From Epithemia pelagica (lineage: Eukaryota; Protista; Bacillariophyta), in assembly GCA_946965045.2 (NCBI GenBank), contig OX337232.1, positions 248,001-312,000 of the forward strand: a stretch of 64,000 nucleotides of DNA, in the 5' to 3' direction. Position numbers and translations under genes: made by a program. The notes beneath the pieces were generated by a model. The model searched no databases. It saw only the letters and a list, made by a program, of their open reading frames with translations, and was not told where the DNA came from. Positions 105 through 51,978 of this stretch are shown here, piece after piece; the stretch's first letter is position 1, and each line of letters opens with the position of its first letter.

Positions 105-1820
105 TTACCACAAGGAGGACGGTGCCGCCTCTCCCGCCACGAGCCACAATCCCACGACAGCCACAACACCCAACATGGCCAAGACCAATTGTTGCGTGGC
201 ATCATCGTCCTCGTCTCGTGATGTTGTTGTGACACTGCCCAACAAGTCTTCGACGGTTTCTTCCTCTTCCTCCTCATTTTCATGGTCAAACATCATCAAG
301 AGGGGTTCTTCCAGGGAACCTTGCGCGTCGGGAACTTGTTGTCGTCCATTGGCGTGACGCGTGTTGGCTCTTCGGTCAGGACCACGAACTTGGTGCTCTT
401 GCAATCGGTCTTGTTGTTGCTGTGGTGGTGGCGGTCTTGGACGCAATGGCGATGGTGGTGAGGTCCACTCGGGGTTTTCCTCTGCCTCTCTTTGTAACGG
501 GTTCGCTGGCCGTGCGGCTGCTGCGGGTGGAGCATGGTTCTCGTTTCCTTGTTGTTGTGGTCGATTGGCCGGGGCATCCGGGTCCTGGTGGTCTTGGACC
601 AAAGGACGCAGTGCTGGTTCTTCCTCCATTAGTGGCTGTGGATGGAGTTGTCCCTCTCCATCGTTGCGTTCCAGTAGTGGCAAATGCTCTGCATGTCGTT
701 GTCGCCGTGGAGGCGACACGGGCTCTCTTTCATTGGCAGGCTGTACATCGACACCATTCGGATTCTCTCCATTTGGATCCAAGGACTCCTCCTCCTCCTC
801 CTCCTCGTCGTCACTGTCATCGTTTGGATCGCGATACCAATCCGGTTCTTCTTCTTCGTGTCGTTCCACTACAACCGCTGCTGCAGCTGCAGCATTGCGT
901 CGAGACGTTGGTGATAATGATGATTGTTGTTGTTGCTGTTGCATGTGGGAACCATGAGCAGAAGCACTGGTGGAATGGTCATTATTATTGAGAGATGGGT
1001 CCTGTTCTTGATCCCACATCCATTCCGTCTCTTCGTCTTCTTGTTGTTGTTGTTCTCGGCCACTGTGGGAAGTCTCGTGCGATGCCGACGGTTCGAATTG
1101 GTCGGTCGCGGCATGGAGGGGATAAACATTCAAGACGCGAACCACCACGACATGACTCTCCTCGTTGTTTCTCATCCGATGCGGCGATCCTCCGTGTCGT
1201 TGTTTTCGTCGTCGTCCATGGGGAGACCCACGGCTCGGGCTCTCATGCCCGTGCGAGGCCGCCGGATATTCTTGAACCAAGACGACAGTTCCTGTATCCA
1301 AATTTTCGTATCGAAAACACAAATTCGATTCTAGAGTGGAGGTGTTGCGTAGTGGAGACGAGGCTTTCTTTTTCGTGCTGGTTGGATCGTAGTGACACGG
1401 TGCTTGCAATTCGGGAAAGTCATGCTCGTCGTCGTCATTATTGTCGTGCTCCAGGGATGATTCGTCGTCCTCATCATCGTCATCTTGTTGCAATTCCAGG
1501 GGACGCTGTCCAATCAAAATCATGCCCTGTTGCAAGGTTGTGAGCACGAGTGCATTGGAAATGCCATATCGGGCTTGTTCCTCCAAGGCTCGTTTCGTTC
1601 GCACGATAATGCGTTGGTGCGGTCGTTTGGTTCTGGCAGTTCGTTGCGGAGACGCGGGTCTCTTTTGATCCAACCACGACCAATGCGCATCTGCAGTGTT
1701 GTTAGTGTCGTCTTGTTCGTCGAGCGACGAGGAAAGATTCAAGAGTTGATTCCAGACATTGGTGGTTCCATTCCTTGTTCTTCTTCTTGTTGTCGTGGTG
1801 GTTGTTTTGGTTCTGCTCAT
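105..1820 (-). CDS. Hypothetical low-complexity (D/E/Q/P-rich) protein with C-terminal hydrophobic helix; may splice on beyond the window start
   Basis: Long ORF; first plausible ATG at 1820 (MSRTKTTT). Ends LVLAMLGVVAVVGLWLV (TM-like). A possible GT donor (TG|GTAAAG) lies at 107-108. Confidence 0.55.
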   Translation of the reverse strand: MSRTKTTTTTTRRRTRNGTTNVWNQLLNLSSSLDEQDDTNNTADAHWSWLDQKRPASPQRTARTKRPHQRIIVRTKRALEEQARYGISNALVLTTLQQGMILIGQRPLELQQDDDDEDDESSLEHDNNDDDEHDFPELQAPCHYDPTSTKKKASSPLRNTSTLESNLCFRYENLDTGTVVLVQEYPAASHGHESPSRGSPHGRRRKQRHGGSPHRMRNNEESHVVVVRVLNVYPLHAATDQFEPSASHETSHSGREQQQQEDEETEWMWDQEQDPSLNNNDHSTSASAHGSHMQQQQQQSSLSPTSRRNAAAAAAVVVERHEEEEPDWYRDPNDDSDDEEEEEEESLDPNGENPNGVDVQPANEREPVSPPRRQRHAEHLPLLERNDGEGQLHPQPLMEEEPALRPLVQDHQDPDAPANRPQQQGNENHAPPAAAARPANPLQREAEENPEWTSPPSPLRPRPPPPQQQQDRLQEHQVRGPDRRANTRHANGRQQVPDAQGSLEEPLLMMFDHENEEEEEETVEDLLGSVTTTSRDEDDDATQQLVLAMLGVVAVVGLWLVAGEAAPSSLW

Positions 1821-2286
1821 GGTTTGTACTAGCGAGTCACAGCCTCGACAAGGAAGCCTTCCAACAACTGCAACGACAAGTTCCAACCGCAACCAAACAC
1901 CAGGGAGAGGAGACTGTGAATGGGGTGGTGCTGCCGCAACGAGAATGAGAAGGTCCCGGCACGAGATGATTTCTCGCGAGTTCTCCGCAAGAAGCACCAG
2001 CCAGCAAGCCGTGTTTGAAACTGGTTTGGAATGTCCTTCTTCTTCTTTTTCTAGAAAGAGGAGATGAAAGTCTTGTGGTTGTGGCTGTTTGCCTTCCTCT
2101 CTCCTTGTCTGGAATGATTCGTGGGTGTTTGTGTTGCGGTCTGTTTTGAATGAGAAACAGTTTTTAGGGGCGCGACCGGGGTGTGATGCCTCGTTTTGTG
2201 GGGCGATGAAGGCACTGACGTCGAATTTGCATTCCACACGGATTCTCTTCGCTCCATGGTCGCACAATTTTCGGACACCGCCCAAA

Positions 2287-2302
2287 CACCAATGCGACTC
2301 AT
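2287..2302 (+). repeat. Left target-site duplication
   Basis: CACCAATGCGACTCAT, identical to 4588-4603. Confidence 0.9.
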
Positions 2303-4472
2303 TATTGATTGCCGTATTGACCTAGCTACTGATTTCCGTCCCCCCTTGCAGCGAGAACACGACAAGTTTCTGATGGACGCTGCTATCTCAGGGCAATTCT
2401 CTGATCTCGAACTCCAGCTAATAAACGCCTGTCGGCTTTTTCTCGGCGTTACCCTAGTGAGTGATATCACATCACCAAAGGGCGATATGATCGAGTCCTT
2501 CGCGATTCAAGGTCAAGACAACCCCACATCAACGGCCAAAGGTCTCCTTCCATATCAAGATCGTCCTAGCACTCGAGCTTGGACCCTATGGCAACGGTTC
2601 CTGGAAGAATTCGCCTCCCTTACTTTGCACGGATACGTCTTGACTGACCCGCTGGGAAAATGGTTAGTCACTGGATTCTCCACTCACAGACAATGGAAAG
2701 AATATCTTGTTCCGAGCGAGGCCATGCTTTATCGCTTTGAACAAGGCTCCTATACATTACATGTGTATACTCATCCCAGGTTTGTGTCTACGCCTTTCAC
2801 CTCTCAGCATCTTCCCCCCACGGCGATTCCAGTTCAAACATCCCCAAGCAGTCATGGTTACACACTTCTCCCTTACCAAGGACAACTTTCTGTTCCAAGC
2901 ACACCACGGTTGCGCACTTTTGATTCTTTCATCCACGACCTTCCCCCTTGGGAAAATCAACTACTGAAAGGTTTTCGGATTCTCACCGATCTTGATGACC
3001 TTCTGACAGTGTTCAACTTATCCGGTCAAGTCTCGCTGGTGACTTGTAGTGACGGGTCTGCTCCACAATTTACAGGCACATTCGGGTGCGTTTGCAGCAC
3101 GATGGAAGGTCAGCGTTTATTCGGTCTCAACGGTCCGGCCCCAGGCTATCGAACCAACTCGTTCCGTGTAGAAAGCTATGGATTCTTAGCTATCTTGCGC
3201 ATTATATTACGGTTATGCGAGTATCATGCATACGAGTTGCCGTCAACACTTGCTTTGTACACCGACTCTGAGAGCCTTATCAAGACAATTTACAAGCGCC
3301 TTGACTGGTCTATTGAGTTCCCCTATAGCACCATGCATCCGGATTGGGATCTACAACAGTGTATCTCTACATCGCTGCGAAAGTTTCCTACGATGCCATC
3401 GATTTCCCATGTTAAAGGTCATCAAGACAGGTTTCAACCTGTTAGCACCTTACCTCTCCCGGCTCAGTTGAATGTGGAGGCTGACGAGTTAGCATCTGCC
3501 TACAAATATCCTCCAACGGAAACTCCGACCTGTGCTCCTTTGATTGAAGGCTCCACAGTTACTCTGCGTTGTCCTCTTGGTACAATTCATTCGAATTACC
3601 GCGCGGTCATCCGCCGACTCGCCCAAGACCCAGTGATCCGTCAATATCTCTGCAGCAAATTCGATTGGTCTCCAGCGGTGATCGATACTATCGACTGGTA
3701 CTCCCACGGGATTGCCAATAGAGCATTCTTCTCTCGGCGACACTTCGTGTCGAAATTTATCTTCGAGTGGCTGCCTCTAGGAAATCTGAAATCAAAGTAT
3801 GCCGAGTACTACGTCGACCATTGTCCTGCCTGTTCTACCCCTACCTTGGAAGATGCCGAGCATTTCCTGCGATGTCCACAACGACGATCTTGGCTCGGTC
3901 CGATGCTCGATGATCTTCGTTCTCACTGGGACGACCAGTCTGTCGCTCCTGCTCTTCAGACTTTGTTTTCCGACGCTCTTCATCACTGGTTGGACGATAC
4001 TCCTCTTCCCACATCCTATGCTTCCCACCTCTATCCTTTACTCACCACTCAAAATATCATTGGCTGGAAACAGCTCTTTTATGGTCGCATGAGCACCCAC
4101 TGGGCGTCCATTCAAGATTCCCACCTCAAATCTCACGATTTCACGTCACCAAAACTCCGTGGCCACTTCTTCGTATCTGGCTCCATCAAAATTATCTGGC
4201 ATCATGCTCATCGTCTTTGGCTTCGCCGAAACGAAGATACCCATGGCACAAATCCTGAAACTCAAGAAATTGCTGCCTACGCCCAAGCCCAACGGGAGGT
4301 TACCGCGCTGTACAACATGCGCCACCTTGTTCACCCATCTGACCAGACCTTGTTTTATTCTTCGCTTGATCAACATTTTACCATTGACACGTCTTCCATA
4401 TCACTTCGGTCCTGGATTAACACCTGGAGGCCAGTGATCCTTCGCTCTGCAAGCCTTTTCTCGTTTATCTAA
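2303..4472 (+). CDS. C-terminal part of retrotransposon polyprotein: post-RT region, RNase H, CCHC zinc knuckle (5'-partial)
   Basis: INACRLFLGVTLVSDI post-RT motif. RNase H acidic residues in CSDGS, RVESYG, LYTDSES, HVKGHQD, LNVEADELA. Zinc knuckle CPACSTPTLEDAEHFLRC. Confidence 0.88.
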
Positions 4473-4587
4473 CACGCTGCCCAGCGCACTGGTAGCTAGT
4501 CCTCGCCTTCTTTTAGGCCCGGCGCGTCGGTCGGCTTACTCCGCGCGGGTAAGTGCGGCAGCGTTAAAATAGACTATTGTTTTTTTT
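2303..4587 (+). mobile_element. 5'-truncated non-LTR retrotransposon (Ambal-like, RNase H-containing)
   Basis: Flanked by a perfect 16-bp direct repeat CACCAATGCGACTCAT (2287-2302 and 4588-4603). Contains an uninterrupted post-RT/RNase H/CCHC ORF, a ~107-nt GC-rich 3' UTR and a terminal T8 tract. Confidence 0.88.
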
Positions 4588-4603
4588 CACCAATGCGACT
4601 CAT
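4588..4603 (+). repeat. Right target-site duplication
   Basis: CACCAATGCGACTCAT, identical to 2287-2302. Confidence 0.9.
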
Positions 4604-36616: not shown

Positions 36617-36734
36617 AGGAACGACCATACCACGATGACAGCACCGCTTCCCGTCTGCTCAGCGAAGTTAAGCATCGTCGGGCCCGGTTAGTACTACGGT
36701 GGGGGACCACGTTGGAATCCCGGGTGTTGTTCAT
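36617..36734 (+). rRNA. 5S: 5S rRNA, copy A (3-nt insertion just before the T-run terminator)
   Basis: ACGACCATACC...GCACCGCTTCCCGTCTGCTCAGCGAAGTTAAGC...GGTTAGTACTACGGTGGGGGACCACG..GGAATCCCGGGTGTTGTTC followed by T5. Confidence 0.95.
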
Positions 36735-37367
36735 CTTTTTGGAACATGGTAGCCGCAACAGATATTTATTGTCGCTGTGTTATTAGTGACTCGGAGATCT
36801 ACGAATACTGCATTCCCGAAGCATCATGCCAAGGCTTGGTGAAGTCTATTTTAGTTGTGCCTCGAATGCTACGATCTCCTCCGAGAGCAGCGGTGAGATA
36901 TGGAGGCTGTGCGAGTGACTTTGGGACTATAGTGGTGGAAGGTGCAACAGCCTCTTCGGATCTAATATCTCTCGCCACTTTGTTCTCCTATATACACAGT
37001 CCTCCTCTATCTCTCTCGCCAAGAAAACCGTAGAAGAGGCGATATGTACCATATGCTGCCATGGAACAAGACTAACTAAAAGGAGAACAAAACTTTTTCG
37101 TACCAAACAAGGCTTTCTTACACACTGGTAGTTTAAAAGTGAGTATTCCATGTTCCATGACACGCACAAGGACCCAGTAAACGACAGTTAACAGAGCAAG
37201 CCGAATCATGTGGAGTCAATCTGTCGGTTTCTCGTATTCTCGAGAAAACCTGGGTCCACTGGTCTCGCTGCCCAATTTCGCTTACCCTCACAAATCGCAC
37301 TGTGCGCACACAAGCCGTGGTTGTGCCAAAGCGTCAAAGAGGCTCTACTAGAACGGGGTGATTAGGA

Positions 37368-40630: not shown

Positions 40631-40748
40631 AGGAACGACCATACCACGATGACAGCACCGCTTCCCGTCTGCTCAGCGAAGTTAAGCATCGTCGGGCCCG
40701 GTTAGTACTACGGTGGGGGACCACGTTGGAATCCCGGGTGTTGTTCTT
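40631..40748 (+). rRNA. 5S: 5S rRNA, copy B
   Basis: 118 nt, helix I AGGAACGAC/GTTGTTCTT, T-run terminator. Confidence 0.96.
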
Positions 40749-41280
40749 TTTGGAACATGGTAGCCGCAACAGATATTTATTGTCGCTGTGTTATTAGTGA
40801 CTCGGAGATCTACGGATACTGCATTCCCGAAGCATCAAGCCAAGACTTGGTGAAGTCTATTTTAGTTTTGCCTCGAATGCTACGACTCCTACGAGAACGG
40901 CGGTGAGATATGGAGGCTGTGCGAGTGACTTTGGAACTATAGTGGTGGAAGGTACAACAGCCTCTTCGGATCTAATATCTCTCGCCACTTTTGTTCTCCT
41001 ATATACACAGTCATCCTCTATCTCTCTCGCCAAAAACACCGTAGAAGAGGCGATATGTACCATATGCTGCCATGGAACAAGACTAACTAGAAGGAGAACA
41101 CAACTTTTTCGTACCAAACAAGGCTTTCTTATTGGTAGTTTAAAAGTGAGTATTCCATGTTCCATGACACGCACAAGGACCCAGTAAACGACAGTTAACA
41201 GAGCAAGCCGAATCATGAGATTGTCGGTTTCTCGTATTCTCGAGAAAACCTGGGTCCACTGGTCTCGCTACCCAATTTCG

Positions 41281-41842: not shown

Positions 41843-41960
41843 GGGAGCGACCATACCACGATGACAGCACCGCTTCCCGTCTGCTCAGCGAAGTTAAGCA
41901 TCGTCGGGCCCGGTTAGTACTACGGTGGGGGACCACGTTGGAATCCCGGGTGTTGTTCTT
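41843..41960 (+). rRNA. 5S: 5S rRNA, copy C (5' variant GGGAGCGAC)
   Basis: Body identical to copies A/B; the two A>G changes in helix I still pair as G.U; T-run terminator. Confidence 0.95.
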
Positions 41961-42358
41961 TTTGGACAATGAGAAGAATACCACAGACGAGATTTATTGT
42001 CGCAATGTTAGATCTACGACCGACGCTACAGCATTCCATCAGCATCAAGGCATGAATTTTTCGTTTTGCCTTGAATGGTATGATCTCCTACGACAAGGGC
42101 GGTGATTTAAAGATTGTACAATCGACTATGGACTCGTGTTTGTGAGTCACTGGAACCATATCGTGGTGGAACTCTCGGGAGGGTGCGACAGTATCGTCGG
42201 ATCTAATCGCTCGTCATTTTTGCTGTCGTATATACACAGTCCTGCTCTATGCCTCTCGGCGAGAGAACCATCAGAGGAGGCGACGTGTACCGAATGTTGC
42301 CATGGAACCAGACTAAGAACTAGATCGTACCAAACAAAAGGCTTTCTACACTGATAGT

Positions 42359-49139: not shown

Positions 49140-50828
49140 TTAGTGTCCGGCCATTTGTCGTTTGCGATAGTCTTGTTCCAATCGGACTTCACAAAATTTG
49201 AGAGCTTGTTGAATTTGTTTGTTGTTGGGTTCTTGTTTGGACGCCTGTGCCAAGTAGGGCAAGGCTTGACTGTACTGTTGTTGGGCATGCAAGGCCAAGC
49301 CGCGCCGAAACAAGGCCTTGAGATTGTCGGGATTCATGGCCAAGGCTTGTTGGGCATCTTGTTCGGCCTTTTCGGGTTGTCCCAATTTCAAAAAGCAAGC
49401 GGCCCGATTGGCGTACACGACATCGCGTGGAAACAGACTGGAGGAAGAATCGCCCAATTCATCCGCCTTGTCCAAGGCCAAGCTGTACAACAAAATGGCT
49501 TGACCATATTCACCAGCCCCAAAGGCTTCATTGCCGCGCGTCTTGTTTTGCTGACATTCGTCAACAATGGCTTGCACGTGTGGCGACACAACCTCTTGGA
49601 CCTCTTCTTCTTCCTTGTTGGTTGCTGTGGTCGTGTTGTTGGTGTTGGTTTTGGTCACGAGTGGATTGCCGTCCTTATCCTGAAGTTGAATCATGTCTTG
49701 GGCCATGGCAATCGCCTTGTCGGCCGCTTGTTGTTTCTTGACTTCGGCCGCCTGCAATTCTCGTTCCGTCATGGCGCGGACTTGATTGCCCGTCGTGGAT
49801 CCCGTCCGGACCACTCGTTCCGTCACGAGTGCTTGATTGTGCACGGACGTGACAAATTGTTGTTCTTCGGGCGTCGCATTGCCCACGGCCGTGGCACCGT
49901 CGGCCAGATAATCGGCCGTCGTTTGATACTCCACCACCGAATCGCGATGGACGGAAACCGTCAAATTGGAAACACCGGCATGAAAAATGCGATCGTCGAC
50001 CGAATGGCCCCAATACAAGTACTGCGACGAATCCGGCGAGGTGGCTGTATTGTGACCGGACGGCGCATTGTGAAATTCCACCGTCACGTTGCGACTCAAA
50101 TCCATTTGCACCGTGGCAATCGTGGCATGGGGTCCGACAATTTTGACCACCACATTGTCACAATGATGCAACTCCAAGGTGCCCGAAATGACTTTGGATT
50201 TGATCCACACAGTACAATTGGATACCTTGTGCAAAAAGATCTTGATCAAGCCAAAAATCGATCGCGTTTTCGCAGTTTCAGTGGGCAAGTCATTTTCGGC
50301 ATCGCCGGCATAGGATTTGGGGGTCAAGGTTGAATTGGCCGGCATTTGAGATTCCAAATGACTCAAATCTTGCGTCACCACCACGGTCGAATCCTGAATG
50401 GATGTTCCCTGCGTGTCGGTAATGCGCAAGACGCGAGTTCCGGCTGCCATGTCTTGTCGTGTCACACGCACCGTCTGCTTGTTGGGAGAGTTGTCCGTAA
50501 ACAGGTGCGTCATGGTTTGCACAATGGCTTGTTCGCGTTCTTGATAGCGATCCAACGTTTGCTTGACGTGTTGCACTTGGAGCGCCTTGGTGTGTTCGTC
50601 GGCTTGGGCTTGGGATCGGGCATATTTGCCGTCGAGGCCCAATTGACTCGTGGCCTCCGCTGTGGCTTGTTCGTCTTCCAATTCCGATTGTTGTACCAAA
50701 TCACTCGCCACCTTGTCCCATTGCGCATAATTGATGCGACCGGCGACGCCTTTTTGGACGACGGTCGAGGATGACGACGTCGTCGTCGTCGTTGTTGCTT
50801 CTGGTTCGGGAGGAGTCGTATTGGCCAT
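49140..50828 (-). CDS. C-CAP/cofactor-C-like beta-helix domain + C-terminal TPR protein
   Basis: INYAQWDKVA N-terminal motif; LIKIFLHKVSNCTVWIKSKVISGTLELHHCDNV; TPRs KTRGNEAFGAGEYGQAILLYS, YANRAACFLKLG, KALFRRGLAL. Confidence 0.85.
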   Translation of the reverse strand: MANTTPPEPEATTTTTTSSSSTVVQKGVAGRINYAQWDKVASDLVQQSELEDEQATAEATSQLGLDGKYARSQAQADEHTKALQVQHVKQTLDRYQEREQAIVQTMTHLFTDNSPNKQTVRVTRQDMAAGTRVLRITDTQGTSIQDSTVVVTQDLSHLESQMPANSTLTPKSYAGDAENDLPTETAKTRSIFGLIKIFLHKVSNCTVWIKSKVISGTLELHHCDNVVVKIVGPHATIATVQMDLSRNVTVEFHNAPSGHNTATSPDSSQYLYWGHSVDDRIFHAGVSNLTVSVHRDSVVEYQTTADYLADGATAVGNATPEEQQFVTSVHNQALVTERVVRTGSTTGNQVRAMTERELQAAEVKKQQAADKAIAMAQDMIQLQDKDGNPLVTKTNTNNTTTATNKEEEEVQEVVSPHVQAIVDECQQNKTRGNEAFGAGEYGQAILLYSLALDKADELGDSSSSLFPRDVVYANRAACFLKLGQPEKAEQDAQQALAMNPDNLKALFRRGLALHAQQQYSQALPYLAQASKQEPNNKQIQQALKFCEVRLEQDYRKRQMAGH

Positions 50829-51041
50829 CTTTTGCGGATACTGTGTCAATCAATCGAACTGCTTGCTGCTTGCTTGTTTGGTTGTTTCAGAAGGGACTGC
50901 GAGCCAACGACTGAGACAACGTTCTAGCCTCTTATTATTCCACACCACACACCAAAGGATCTCCCACACTTTTTGTGAGATGGTCGTCGTCGTTGTCGTC
51001 GTTTTCTTGTTGTTGCATCCAAGACTTTACACAATGACTTT

Positions 51042-51225
51042 TGCGTCGCAGTCGTGCACGCACAAATGACCCAACGAACAGCGACCCGCCCAACCAGTTT
51101 CGCGACCAGATCAAGGAAATGAAACCTTGCTCGGCTGTGCTCCATGATTCCGAGCCAGGGCAGTCGGTCGGCGTCACGTTGCGGCGTGCGTGCGGCGCAG
51201 CTGGAAGAATAGACTATTCCCTTTT
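51042..51225 (+). ncRNA. Putative structured RNA / solo 3'-tail homologous to the retroelement 3' UTR at 4474-4587
   Basis: Collinear exact blocks GTCGGTCGGC, GTGCGGC and AATAGACTATT; equivalent stems formed from different sequence; followed by T4. Confidence 0.5.
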
Positions 51226-51227
51226 AT

Positions 51228-51978
51228 CCGAGCTATGAGACGGCATTGACTACAGGCTTCTAGCATTCGACCTAGTATGCAATGTCATTGACTATGGTGG
51301 GATTCGATCTAAATTCGAGCTTTGCAAAAATGGCATCGACAGTGGGTTCCAATCTATATTCGAGCTATACGATGGCATCGACTGTAAGTTTTGATGGATT
51401 CGAGACCTATGCGATGGCATCGAATGTGGGTTCCGATCTATTCTAGCTATGCAGTGGCATCGACAGTGGGTTTCGATCTATTCGAGCTATACGATGGCAT
51501 CGACAGTGCGATTCAATCTACTCGAGCTTTGCGATGGCATCGACAGTGGGTTTCGATCTATTCGAGCTATACAATGGCATCGACAGAGGGTTCCGATCTA
51601 TATTCGAGCTTTTGCGATGGCATCGACTGTGGGTTCCGATCTATTCGAGCTATACAATGGCATCGACAGTGCGATTCAATCTACTCGAGCTTTGCGATGG
51701 CATCGACTGTGGGTTCCGATCTATTCGAGCTATGCGATGGCATTGACTGTGGGATTCGATTTTTTTCGAGCTTTGCGATGGCATTGAGCGTGGTTTCGAT
51801 CTTTTCGAGCTTTGCGATGGCATTGAGTATGGGCTTCAATCTATATTCGAGCGTTGAAATGGCACTGAGTGTGGGCTTCGATCCATTCGAGCTATGCAAT
51901 GCCGTCTTCTGTGGGTTTCGATCTTTTATTCGAGCTTTGCGATGGCATCGACTGTGATTGTTGATCTATTCGAGCTAC
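51228..51978 (+). repeat. Minisatellite, ~18 units of ~40 bp (consensus TTCGAGCTATGCGATGGCATCGACAGTGGGTTCCGATCTA)
   Basis: Head-to-tail degenerate units with no unique spacers. Confidence 0.93.

Follow-up and report, generated by a model that had tools for sequence, protein, structure and literature searches.

R2 and other site-specific insect long interspersed nuclear elements (LINEs) carry a structured 3′ untranslated region (UTR) that is the binding site of their reverse transcriptase (RT), and target-primed reverse transcription starts from a defined 3′ position without poly(A). In LINE systems of the stringent type, the protein encoded by the second open reading frame (ORF2) binds a stem-loop in its cognate tail and the tail is needed for retrotransposition (PMC4176376, PMC1636434); binding of the cognate tail stem-loop is described for the ORF2 proteins of zebrafish ZfL2 (PMC4176376). 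Here we analysed a 64,000-nucleotide (nt) stretch of the genome of the diatom Epithemia pelagica (contig OX337232.1, positions 248,001 to 312,000 of the forward strand; hereafter the window, to which coordinates refer unless another locus is named). Two sites in it, 4497-4587 (locus A) and 51139-51225 (locus B), are copies of a ~95-nt folded RNA tail that belongs to a diatom LINE family and has been borrowed by a short interspersed nuclear element (SINE). This tail, termed the module below, is in our judgement likely to be the RT-recognition tail of a stringent-type LINE/SINE pair.

The nearest described systems are the eel element UnaL2 with its partner SINE and the zebrafish elements ZfL2-1 and ZfL2-2. 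They resemble the diatom elements (PMC1636434, PMC4176376) in having a conserved stem-loop tail at the extreme 3′ end of the LINE that is common to a tRNA-derived SINE, a stem with an internal loop or bulge, and an end formed by a short repeat instead of poly(A). They differ in that the diatom sequence is unrelated and belongs to another LINE lineage (with an RNase H domain, and an RT that Pfam barely detects), that the diatom module is larger (~95 nt, two hairpins, the second, P2, of ~17-20 bp) and that its terminal repeat is a mononucleotide U run. A structured 3′ UTR and, as we read the diatom side, a defined initiation point without poly(A) would be common to R2 and the diatom elements, but R2 has a restriction-like endonuclease and a single ribosomal DNA target, whereas the diatom elements have an apurinic/apyrimidinic (AP)-type endonuclease and dispersed targets. 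The relaxed-type, poly(A)-dependent L1 elements of mammals and plants (PMC3472496) are likewise AP-endonuclease LINEs that mobilise SINEs in trans and leave target-site duplications (TSDs) and 5′ truncations; L1 recognises poly(A), whereas the diatom elements have a conserved structured tail and oligo-U and lack poly(A). The SINE, finally, matches the tRNA-derived SINE2 class of Repbase (PMC4455052) in its A/B-box head, body, LINE-derived tail, length of ~270 nt and TSDs, and departs from it in its head, which is so degenerate that neither ARAGORN nor the Rfam tRNA model calls it.

Because a structured LINE tail common to a SINE is already a textbook phenomenon, the module is a new family of a known kind; the RNA family itself is new, and its oligo-U end is the most unusual aspect. 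At the gathering threshold of Rfam 15 only three 5S ribosomal RNA (rRNA) genes were detected in the window, and in E-value mode, which covered SINE and LINE loci as well as the module, nothing fell below E ~1 on the module, the best match being Pistol; the initial annotation had likewise recognised no known family. We found no account in the literature consulted of a diatom LINE tail or LINE/SINE pair, nor of a LINE end made of a structured module and oligo-U. The nearest entries are an RTE-like LINE in Thalassiosira and a 'putative SINE' in Phaeodactylum, the latter consisting of 13 automatically annotated copies with no partner LINE (PMC5859163), which can be set beside the diatom SINE by description only. 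As far as the literature consulted shows, this is the first well-supported LINE/SINE partnership in a diatom.

Position, spread and fold of the module

The sequence blocks that had been listed for the two loci are all present (Table 1), and their resemblance reflects homology. With at most one mismatch, the 11-mer AATAGACTATT occurs four times in the window against 0.55 expected, a number reached in none of 100 shuffles and thus above chance, while the 10-mer GTCGGTCGGC alone is near expectation (six matches at the same tolerance, 3.3 expected). In the 60.5-Mb genome the three-block pattern turns up five times, whereas its reversed control is absent. A covariance model of 100 positions and 18 pairs (R1) finds two sites only in the window, 4499-4592 (86.9 bits, E 5.5e-19) and 51140-51232 (66.4 bits, E 6.2e-14), and at least 150 matches in the genome, the weakest among the matches listed scoring 51.9 bits; the further genomic copies that the initial annotation had called for thus exist. 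DNA searches with loci A and B as queries returned 48 and 104 candidate copies, respectively, at 73-100% identity. Because these matches are confined to approximately positions 55-150 of the locus A query and 110-196 of the locus B query, the common unit is 4497-4587 and 51139-51225, and the extents first proposed (4474-4587 and 51042-51225) were too long, starting ahead of ~4497 and ~51139.

The module is a constant LINE end. In a set of 16 LINE 3′ ends picked by protein similarity alone, it lies 25-160 nt past the ORF2 stop codon in every case, and in the window the stop codon (4470-4472), the module and a TSD starting at 4588 follow one another, so that the module occupies the extreme 3′ end. 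Between LINE subfamilies the tail retains 77-84% nucleotide identity as compared with 47-54% protein identity over the C-terminal part of ORF2 (758-aa query), and the ~25-nt leader from stop codon to module cannot be aligned; the tail is therefore more conserved than the adjoining UTR and coding sequence. The terminal T run exceeds any T run within the ORFs and the copies never end in poly(A). Its length is T6-T16 in copies with TSDs and greater in others, and it differs even between the near-identical copies in the window (T8) and at locus L008 (T16), a variation that fits slippage, untemplated addition or RNA uridylation, which the data do not separate.

The fold was derived as an RNAalifold consensus of 56 copies, with pairs counted in 72 distinct copies. 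It consists of a short hairpin, P1, and of P2, a long and irregular one formed by pairing of GUCGGUCGR with YGCGGCAGC and closed by a variable upper stem. An alignment-free check gave a consistent picture: 34 distinct P1 segments nearly all form a hairpin of 3-9 bp that ends just before CC(N)GG, and 31 distinct upper-P2 segments almost all form 7 bp. Exchanges at the upper-stem pairs include GC/CG/UA, CG/UA/UG, CG/GC and CG/AU/UA. Paired cells make up 90.4% of the 72 copies as against 83.2% in shuffles, and covariation amounts to 0.258 compared with 0.138 after shuffling (0 of 500 as high) and 0.02-0.06 in slid-partner controls, which keep the relatedness of the copies. By these compensatory changes, of the kind a stringent-type LINE tail shows in its stem-loop, the module is a selected RNA fold in which P1 and upper P2 covary strongly, as had been proposed from the swapped stems of the two loci. 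One element of that proposal did not hold: GTCGGTCGGC is one strand of a conserved helix and not a loop. GUCGGUCG and GCGGCAGC are nearly unchanged in the 72 copies, and the four central pairs are invariant or deviate in one or two copies. At the pair 4534/4554, G.U and A.C each account for about half of the copies, among LINE and SINE tails alike, with two A-U exceptions in the genome and A-U also in Epithemia and a Tara contig; the switch could be an isosteric wobble exchange, or could reflect linkage.

The initial annotation had enclosed this fold in outer stems at both loci. Duplex energies, compared with those of shuffled sequence and, for locus A, across 49 distinct upstream contexts, showed such stems to be specific to one subfamily at locus A and at chance level at locus B. 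The locus A duplex, 4474-4490 with 4552-4564, reaches -21.7 kcal/mol (z -4.5) and is taken up by the minimum-energy fold of the single sequence 4474-4587. It occurs only in the subfamily of the window copy and L007-L010 (z about -4) and is in competition with the conserved helix between GUCGGUCG and CGGC..GC; elsewhere, 43 of the 49 contexts give z of -1.9 to +3.3, and L019 shows weak complementarity (z -2.6) in an unrelated context. We regard this stem as a lineage-specific feature. The outer stems of locus B lie in flanking DNA that is not homologous to the element and were rejected: their -28.2 kcal/mol compares with -22.3 +/- 3.3 kcal/mol in shuffles, of which 17 of 500 were as good, and is equalled by 5.5% of natural stretches of matched GC content from within the 64 kb.

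Homologues of ORF2 exist in Epithemia clementina, Fragilaria crotonensis and many metagenome contigs, and ten from other species or metagenomes were examined. The module stands directly past the stop codon in six contigs that extend beyond it, where ORF2 is 45% (E. clementina), 33% (F. crotonensis) and 32-45% (four metagenome contigs) identical at the protein level. R1 scores are 66.7 bits in Epithemia, 62 in a Tara Oceans contig, 26.5 in Fragilaria and 33, 28.9 and 16.8 in three metagenome LINEs. P1 and upper P2 are wholly different in these tails yet complementary (e.g., CAAGGG-UUCG-CCCUUG in Epithemia), and the lower helix shows C-G to U-A (in L099) and U.G to C-G or U-A among L099-L101. 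The outer pairs of P2 are C-G and G.U in the LINE tails of this genome, A-U and C-G in SINE tails, and U-A, G-C and C-G in the distant relatives. With the other species added, covariation rises to 0.350 compared with 0.150 in shuffles (0 of 500 as high). The stretch UAAA(N)UAGA followed by a run of T7-T17 is kept in Epithemia, Fragilaria and the metagenome LINEs. A pattern scan of metagenomes gave 30 matches, of which one, a solo tail in a marine metagenome (L110), is a true module; the rest are chance matches, in number close to the ~40 estimated beforehand. No module was seen in L102-L104 (26-32% identity), nor in L098 (38%), where only 45 nt of contig follow the stop codon, and the tail may be absent from part of the wider protein family.

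The LINE and SINE copies

Locus A closes a 5′-truncated LINE. The open frame 2196-4472 contains D..E..D..H..D RNase H-like motifs and matches, at 98% identity, the 3′ part of a 1752-aa ORF on C13, and homology to the full LINE copy begins at 2303. More than 170 candidate copies of the large ORF are present in the genome. Full copies have either a single ORF of 1752-2027 aa or a 577-aa ORF1 with a 1910-aa ORF2, and give weak Pfam matches to Exo_endo_phos, RVT_1 and RNase_H. The family is thus an AP-endonuclease LINE with RNase H, and the initial description of the site as the 3′ tail of an RNase H-bearing retroelement without long terminal repeats is borne out by the ORF motifs and Pfam matches; a sequence search of the Protein Data Bank with ORF2 returned nothing. 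Ambal, the group to which the element had been likened, appears in the Repbase listing by name only (PMC4455052).

The insertion also exists as an empty site. Contigs of two samples run from 2273-2286 and the 16-mer CACCAATGCGACTCAT straight into 4604 onward, and the filled 5′ junction is spanned by other contigs of the same organism, so empty and filled alleles coexist. Because the empty target site has no T run, the T8 at 4580-4587 was brought by the element. The insertion 2303-4587 is polymorphic or heterozygous and therefore recent; given that it is still polymorphic, the LINE system may be active. Two TSD-flanked insertions of the window subfamily (window 2281-2286; L008, G000:C3 ~4190800-4191500) lie directly after CCCAAA. 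Across 16 TSDs, eight have an A just before the duplication; no target-site consensus is resolved, and the sample is too small for a nick preference.

Locus B is the solo, SINE-type copy that it had been suspected to be: no LINE coding sequence lies within 1.5 kb upstream of copies of its type, and its homology to the full SINE begins at GCTCCATGATTCCGA (51139), the DNA further upstream being unique in the genome. Alignment of the upstream DNA of locus-B-type copies yields a SINE of ~270 nt with a fixed 5′ end. Its head reads ACCA-GCCGCCT-TG-GTCGAGTGGTTCGGAC...CCTGGGTGTCCAGG-GTTCGAGTCC...AGGTGGT and contains an A box, TTGGTCGAGTGG, and a perfect B box, GGTTCGAGTCC, so that the tail is found on a short non-coding element with both boxes. 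By eye, a 7-bp acceptor-like pairing, a D arm and a variable-arm hairpin can be made out as a cloverleaf remnant, and the head looks as a decayed class-II tRNA would. Of the ~44 SINE copies, ~17 are of full length; the 5′ truncation point varies among the others, and all reach the 3′ end. TSDs of 10-19 bp flank the SINE copies (10-20 bp for LINE and SINE together), which with the 5′ truncations are the hallmarks of target-primed reverse transcription. Locus B and the SINE copy L061 have a CCGA|GCCAGGG deletion in common, by which the usual 3′ strand of P1 is lost and a GCUC/GAGC hairpin is left.

SINE subfamilies (L040, L041, L044, L039 and L054 versus L053, L058 and L043) combine a UGCG loop with AGAUCUCACCC or UAGC with AGACUAUUCCC, and in the LINE copies L092 and L093 AGAUCUCCC goes with a UGCG or UGUG loop, resembling the tails of the SINE subfamilies; these combinations would suggest an exchange of tails between SINE and LINEs. 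At L012:1503-1704 (G000:C1:5170191-5170392) a 5′-truncated SINE tail follows directly after the T13 of a LINE tail, the modules standing head to tail, and a similar SINE fragment comes right after the LINE tail at L092:452-482. Element ends may be preferred targets.

Role of the module

Cis-acting RT recognition appears to us the best reading of what the module does. Observed are the copy number and position of the module, its conservation and covariation, and the TSDs, truncations and polymorphism of the insertions; the steps we infer concern protein binding, the site of RT initiation and the polymerases used. The LINE family encodes ORF1 and an ORF2 protein with AP-type endonuclease, RT, RNase H and a C-terminal Cys/His region. 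In its RNA, P1 is free in sequence, and P2 (~17-20 bp) has a variable upper half and an invariant lower half (GUCGGUCGR/YGCGGCAGC) with an internal loop, a bulged G and the G.U or A.C pair; an invariant single-stranded UAAAAUAGA, ~7 variable bases and the oligo-U run follow. By analogy with stringent-type LINEs, the element's own ORF2 protein may bind this tail by recognising the lower P2 helix and UAAAAUAGA, while for P1 and the upper P2 stem folding alone would suffice. Target-primed reverse transcription would then use a nicked chromosomal site and begin at the U run or inside it, with TSDs of 10-20 bp, frequent 5′ truncation and a T run of varying length as the outcome. The ~270-nt non-autonomous element with the same tail would be mobilised in trans, and 51139-51225 is a severely 5′-truncated insertion of it. 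The SINE is presumably transcribed by RNA polymerase III (Pol III), because its tRNA-like head contains A and B boxes, and its terminal T run could double as the Pol III terminator. For the LINE itself, transcription by Pol III is rejected in view of the 14-31 runs of at least four T inside each of its ORFs.

We propose more tentatively, as a possibility that falls short of an even chance, that a pennate-diatom LINE clade swapped poly(A) for the structured module and oligo-U, RT starting on U as a mirror of L1. If true, the terminal T run would be the RT start for the LINE and the Pol III terminator for the tRNA-derived SINE. How an RT chooses its template can be approached here through specific features, namely the invariant lower helix, the G.U/A.C exchange and the oligo-U end. 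The tail offers a practical handle for the study of retrotransposition in ecologically important algae, and, as a cleanly bounded structured RNA family, can be added to Rfam and repeat libraries, a gain for the annotation of transposable elements in the genomes and metagenomes of diatoms, in which these ORFs largely escape Pfam.

Several observations weigh against RT recognition by the module as drawn here. In L077, a LINE whose 2027-aa ORF is intact, the tail is short of half of P2: at L077:543-621 on the minus strand (G000:C18, ~31000) the junction and the P2 5′ strand are missing (GGGCGCGTCGGTCGACGTCACC deleted), and UAAAAUAGA and a long T run are kept. The lower P2 helix barely varies in this genome and is therefore neither supported nor contradicted there; its support comes from RNAalifold and from a few compensatory changes in distant relatives. 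Folding energies of single sequences are unremarkable (z -0.1 to -1.9). Neither ARAGORN, run on eight SINE loci, nor the Rfam tRNA model calls the SINE head, and its tRNA descent therefore rests on direct reading. Finally, among the LINEs sampled no exact partner of the SINE was found, none having a tail identical to the SINE-type junctions (GGGCAG... and ...CUGGAAGAAUAGA).

Of the other explanations, the one that fares best, though we think it improbable, is that the module serves mainly in 3′-end formation or stability of a non-polyadenylated RNA, RT recognition being secondary or absent. The hairpin and U run would then act as a terminator-like or La/Lsm-binding protective end. The hairpin-rich, oligo-T end of all copies in place of poly(A) and a T run longer than those within the ORFs speak for this, and in the SINE a T run is where Pol III would be expected to stop. 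However, such a role has no need for LINE and SINE to share the module, nor for TSD-flanked, 5′-truncated copies always to retain it, and the invariance of UAAAAUAGA and the lower helix points to sequence-specific recognition. The two roles are compatible with each other.

We see very little prospect that the module is a self-cleaving ribozyme trimming the retroelement transcript. Ribozymes of the hepatitis delta virus-like and hammerhead types do occur in other retroelements, including non-LTR elements, and 4510-4553 gives a sub-threshold partial match to Pistol (14.9 bits, E 1.2; gathering threshold 34.5). Yet most of the bases behind this match belong to P1 and upper P2 and are not the same in other subfamilies. 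None of the ribozyme families in Rfam scores below E 1 against the module, and no conserved pseudoknot partner was found. The idea, entertained in the initial annotation, of a captured host Pol III-type non-coding RNA, with 51139-51225 as its gene or pseudogene, deserves equally little credence. It could appeal to the T-run end and to the copy at 51139 without an ORF, but every copy examined is a LINE or SINE 3′ end or a truncated tail: where the junctions are of the LINE type, a LINE ORF precedes the module or the copy is a TSD-flanked truncation; where they are of the SINE type, SINE sequence or a truncation lies upstream. Among the copies examined there was no free-standing gene with a conserved 5′ end or upstream promoter of its own, the module belongs to no Rfam family, and from one diatom species to another it stays with LINE ORFs whose proteins are 33-45% identical. 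That the likeness reflects mere recent common descent of repeats, with no selected fold, is the least credible of all, since the close kinship of many copies does inflate shuffle-based covariation tests but slid-partner controls, which retain that kinship, drop to 0.02-0.08, and the cross-species data contradict it, the same layout standing beside ORFs of 32-45% protein identity abroad with stems swapped for other complementary sequences.

Feature coordinates and neighbouring sequences

Table 1. Coordinates of the LINE, the module and their parts at loci A and B of the window
Feature	Position	Strand	Remarks
5′ TSD copy CACCAATGCGACTCAT	2287-2302	+	Identical to 4588-4603
5′-truncated ORF2 remnant	2303-4472	+	RNase H-like domain, C-terminal Cys/His region; stop TAA 4470-4472
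Variable 3′ UTR leader	4473-4496	+	4474-4490 complementary to 4552-4564 in one subfamily only
Blocks ACGCTGCC / GGCAGCGT	4474-4481 / 4557-4564		Locus A, proposed outer stem
Blocks GCACT / AGTGC	4486-4490 / 4552-4556		Locus A, proposed outer stem
Conserved 5′ edge UAGUCCUC	4497-4504	+	Kept in all LINE-type tails, Epithemia and one Tara contig
Hairpin P1 (GCCU / UCUUUU / AGGC)	4505-4518	+	Pairs 4505-4508 / 4515-4518 (blocks GCCT/AGGC); compensatory changes; 7-nt linker follows
Junction and long irregular hairpin P2	4519-4564	+	RNAalifold consensus, covariation
P2 outer pairs	4524-4525 / 4563-4564	+	
Block GTCGGTCGGC	4526-4535		Locus A; 17-nt gap follows
P2 lower-helix strands GUCGGUCGGC and GUGCGGCAGC	4526-4535 and 4553-4562	+	
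P2 lower-helix pairs	4526-4527 / 4561-4562 and 4530-4533 / 4556-4559		CG/A internal loop between; G4555 bulged
P2 G.U pair	G4534.U4554		Between lower helix and upper stem
P2 upper 7-bp stem	4535-4542 / 4547-4553	+	Loop GCGC (4-5 nt)
Block GTGCGGC	4553-4559		Locus A
Single-stranded 3′ stretch UAAAAUAGACUAUUG, core UAAAAUAGA	4565-4579	+	Near-invariant, 56-73 copies
Block AATAGACTATT	4568-4578		Locus A
Oligo-T (RNA: oligo-U) element end, T8	4580-4587	+	Between element and 3′ TSD
3′ TSD copy CACCAATGCGACTCAT	4588-4603	+	Perfect 16-bp duplication
Solo tail, 5′-truncated SINE-type module	51139-51225	+	R1 66.4 bits
Locus B P1 substitute GCUC / GAGC	51139-51142 / 51152-51155	+	Short hairpin
Locus B P2	51163-51201	+	Upper stem 51173-51179 / 51184-51189; loop UGCG; GC insertion 51195-51196
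Block GTCGGTCGGC	51163-51172		Locus B; 17-nt gap follows
Block GTGCGGC	51190-51196		Locus B
Block AATAGACTATT	51208-51218		Locus B; T4 follows
Locus B 3′ end	UAGA ending 51213	+	Then CUAUUCCC, U4

Just upstream of the LINE in the window, on the opposite strand, lies a 726-aa frame of very low complexity (105-2285, minus strand; runs of Q, E, D and P) that has no Pfam match. At the full-length LINE of locus L076 (G000:C13), an ORF of the FkbM methyltransferase type (L076:6075-7253, minus strand; Methyltransf_21, E 3.8e-18) is found directly upstream and is probably a neighbouring host gene and not part of the element. A 569-aa frame with C-terminal tetratricopeptide (TPR) repeats (49140-50849, minus strand; TPR_1, E 7e-14) precedes the solo tail at 51139 and has the appearance of an ordinary host gene. 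The three 5S rRNA genes of the window, at 36617-36735, 40631-40749 and 41843-41961, are all on the plus strand and score 99-103 bits.

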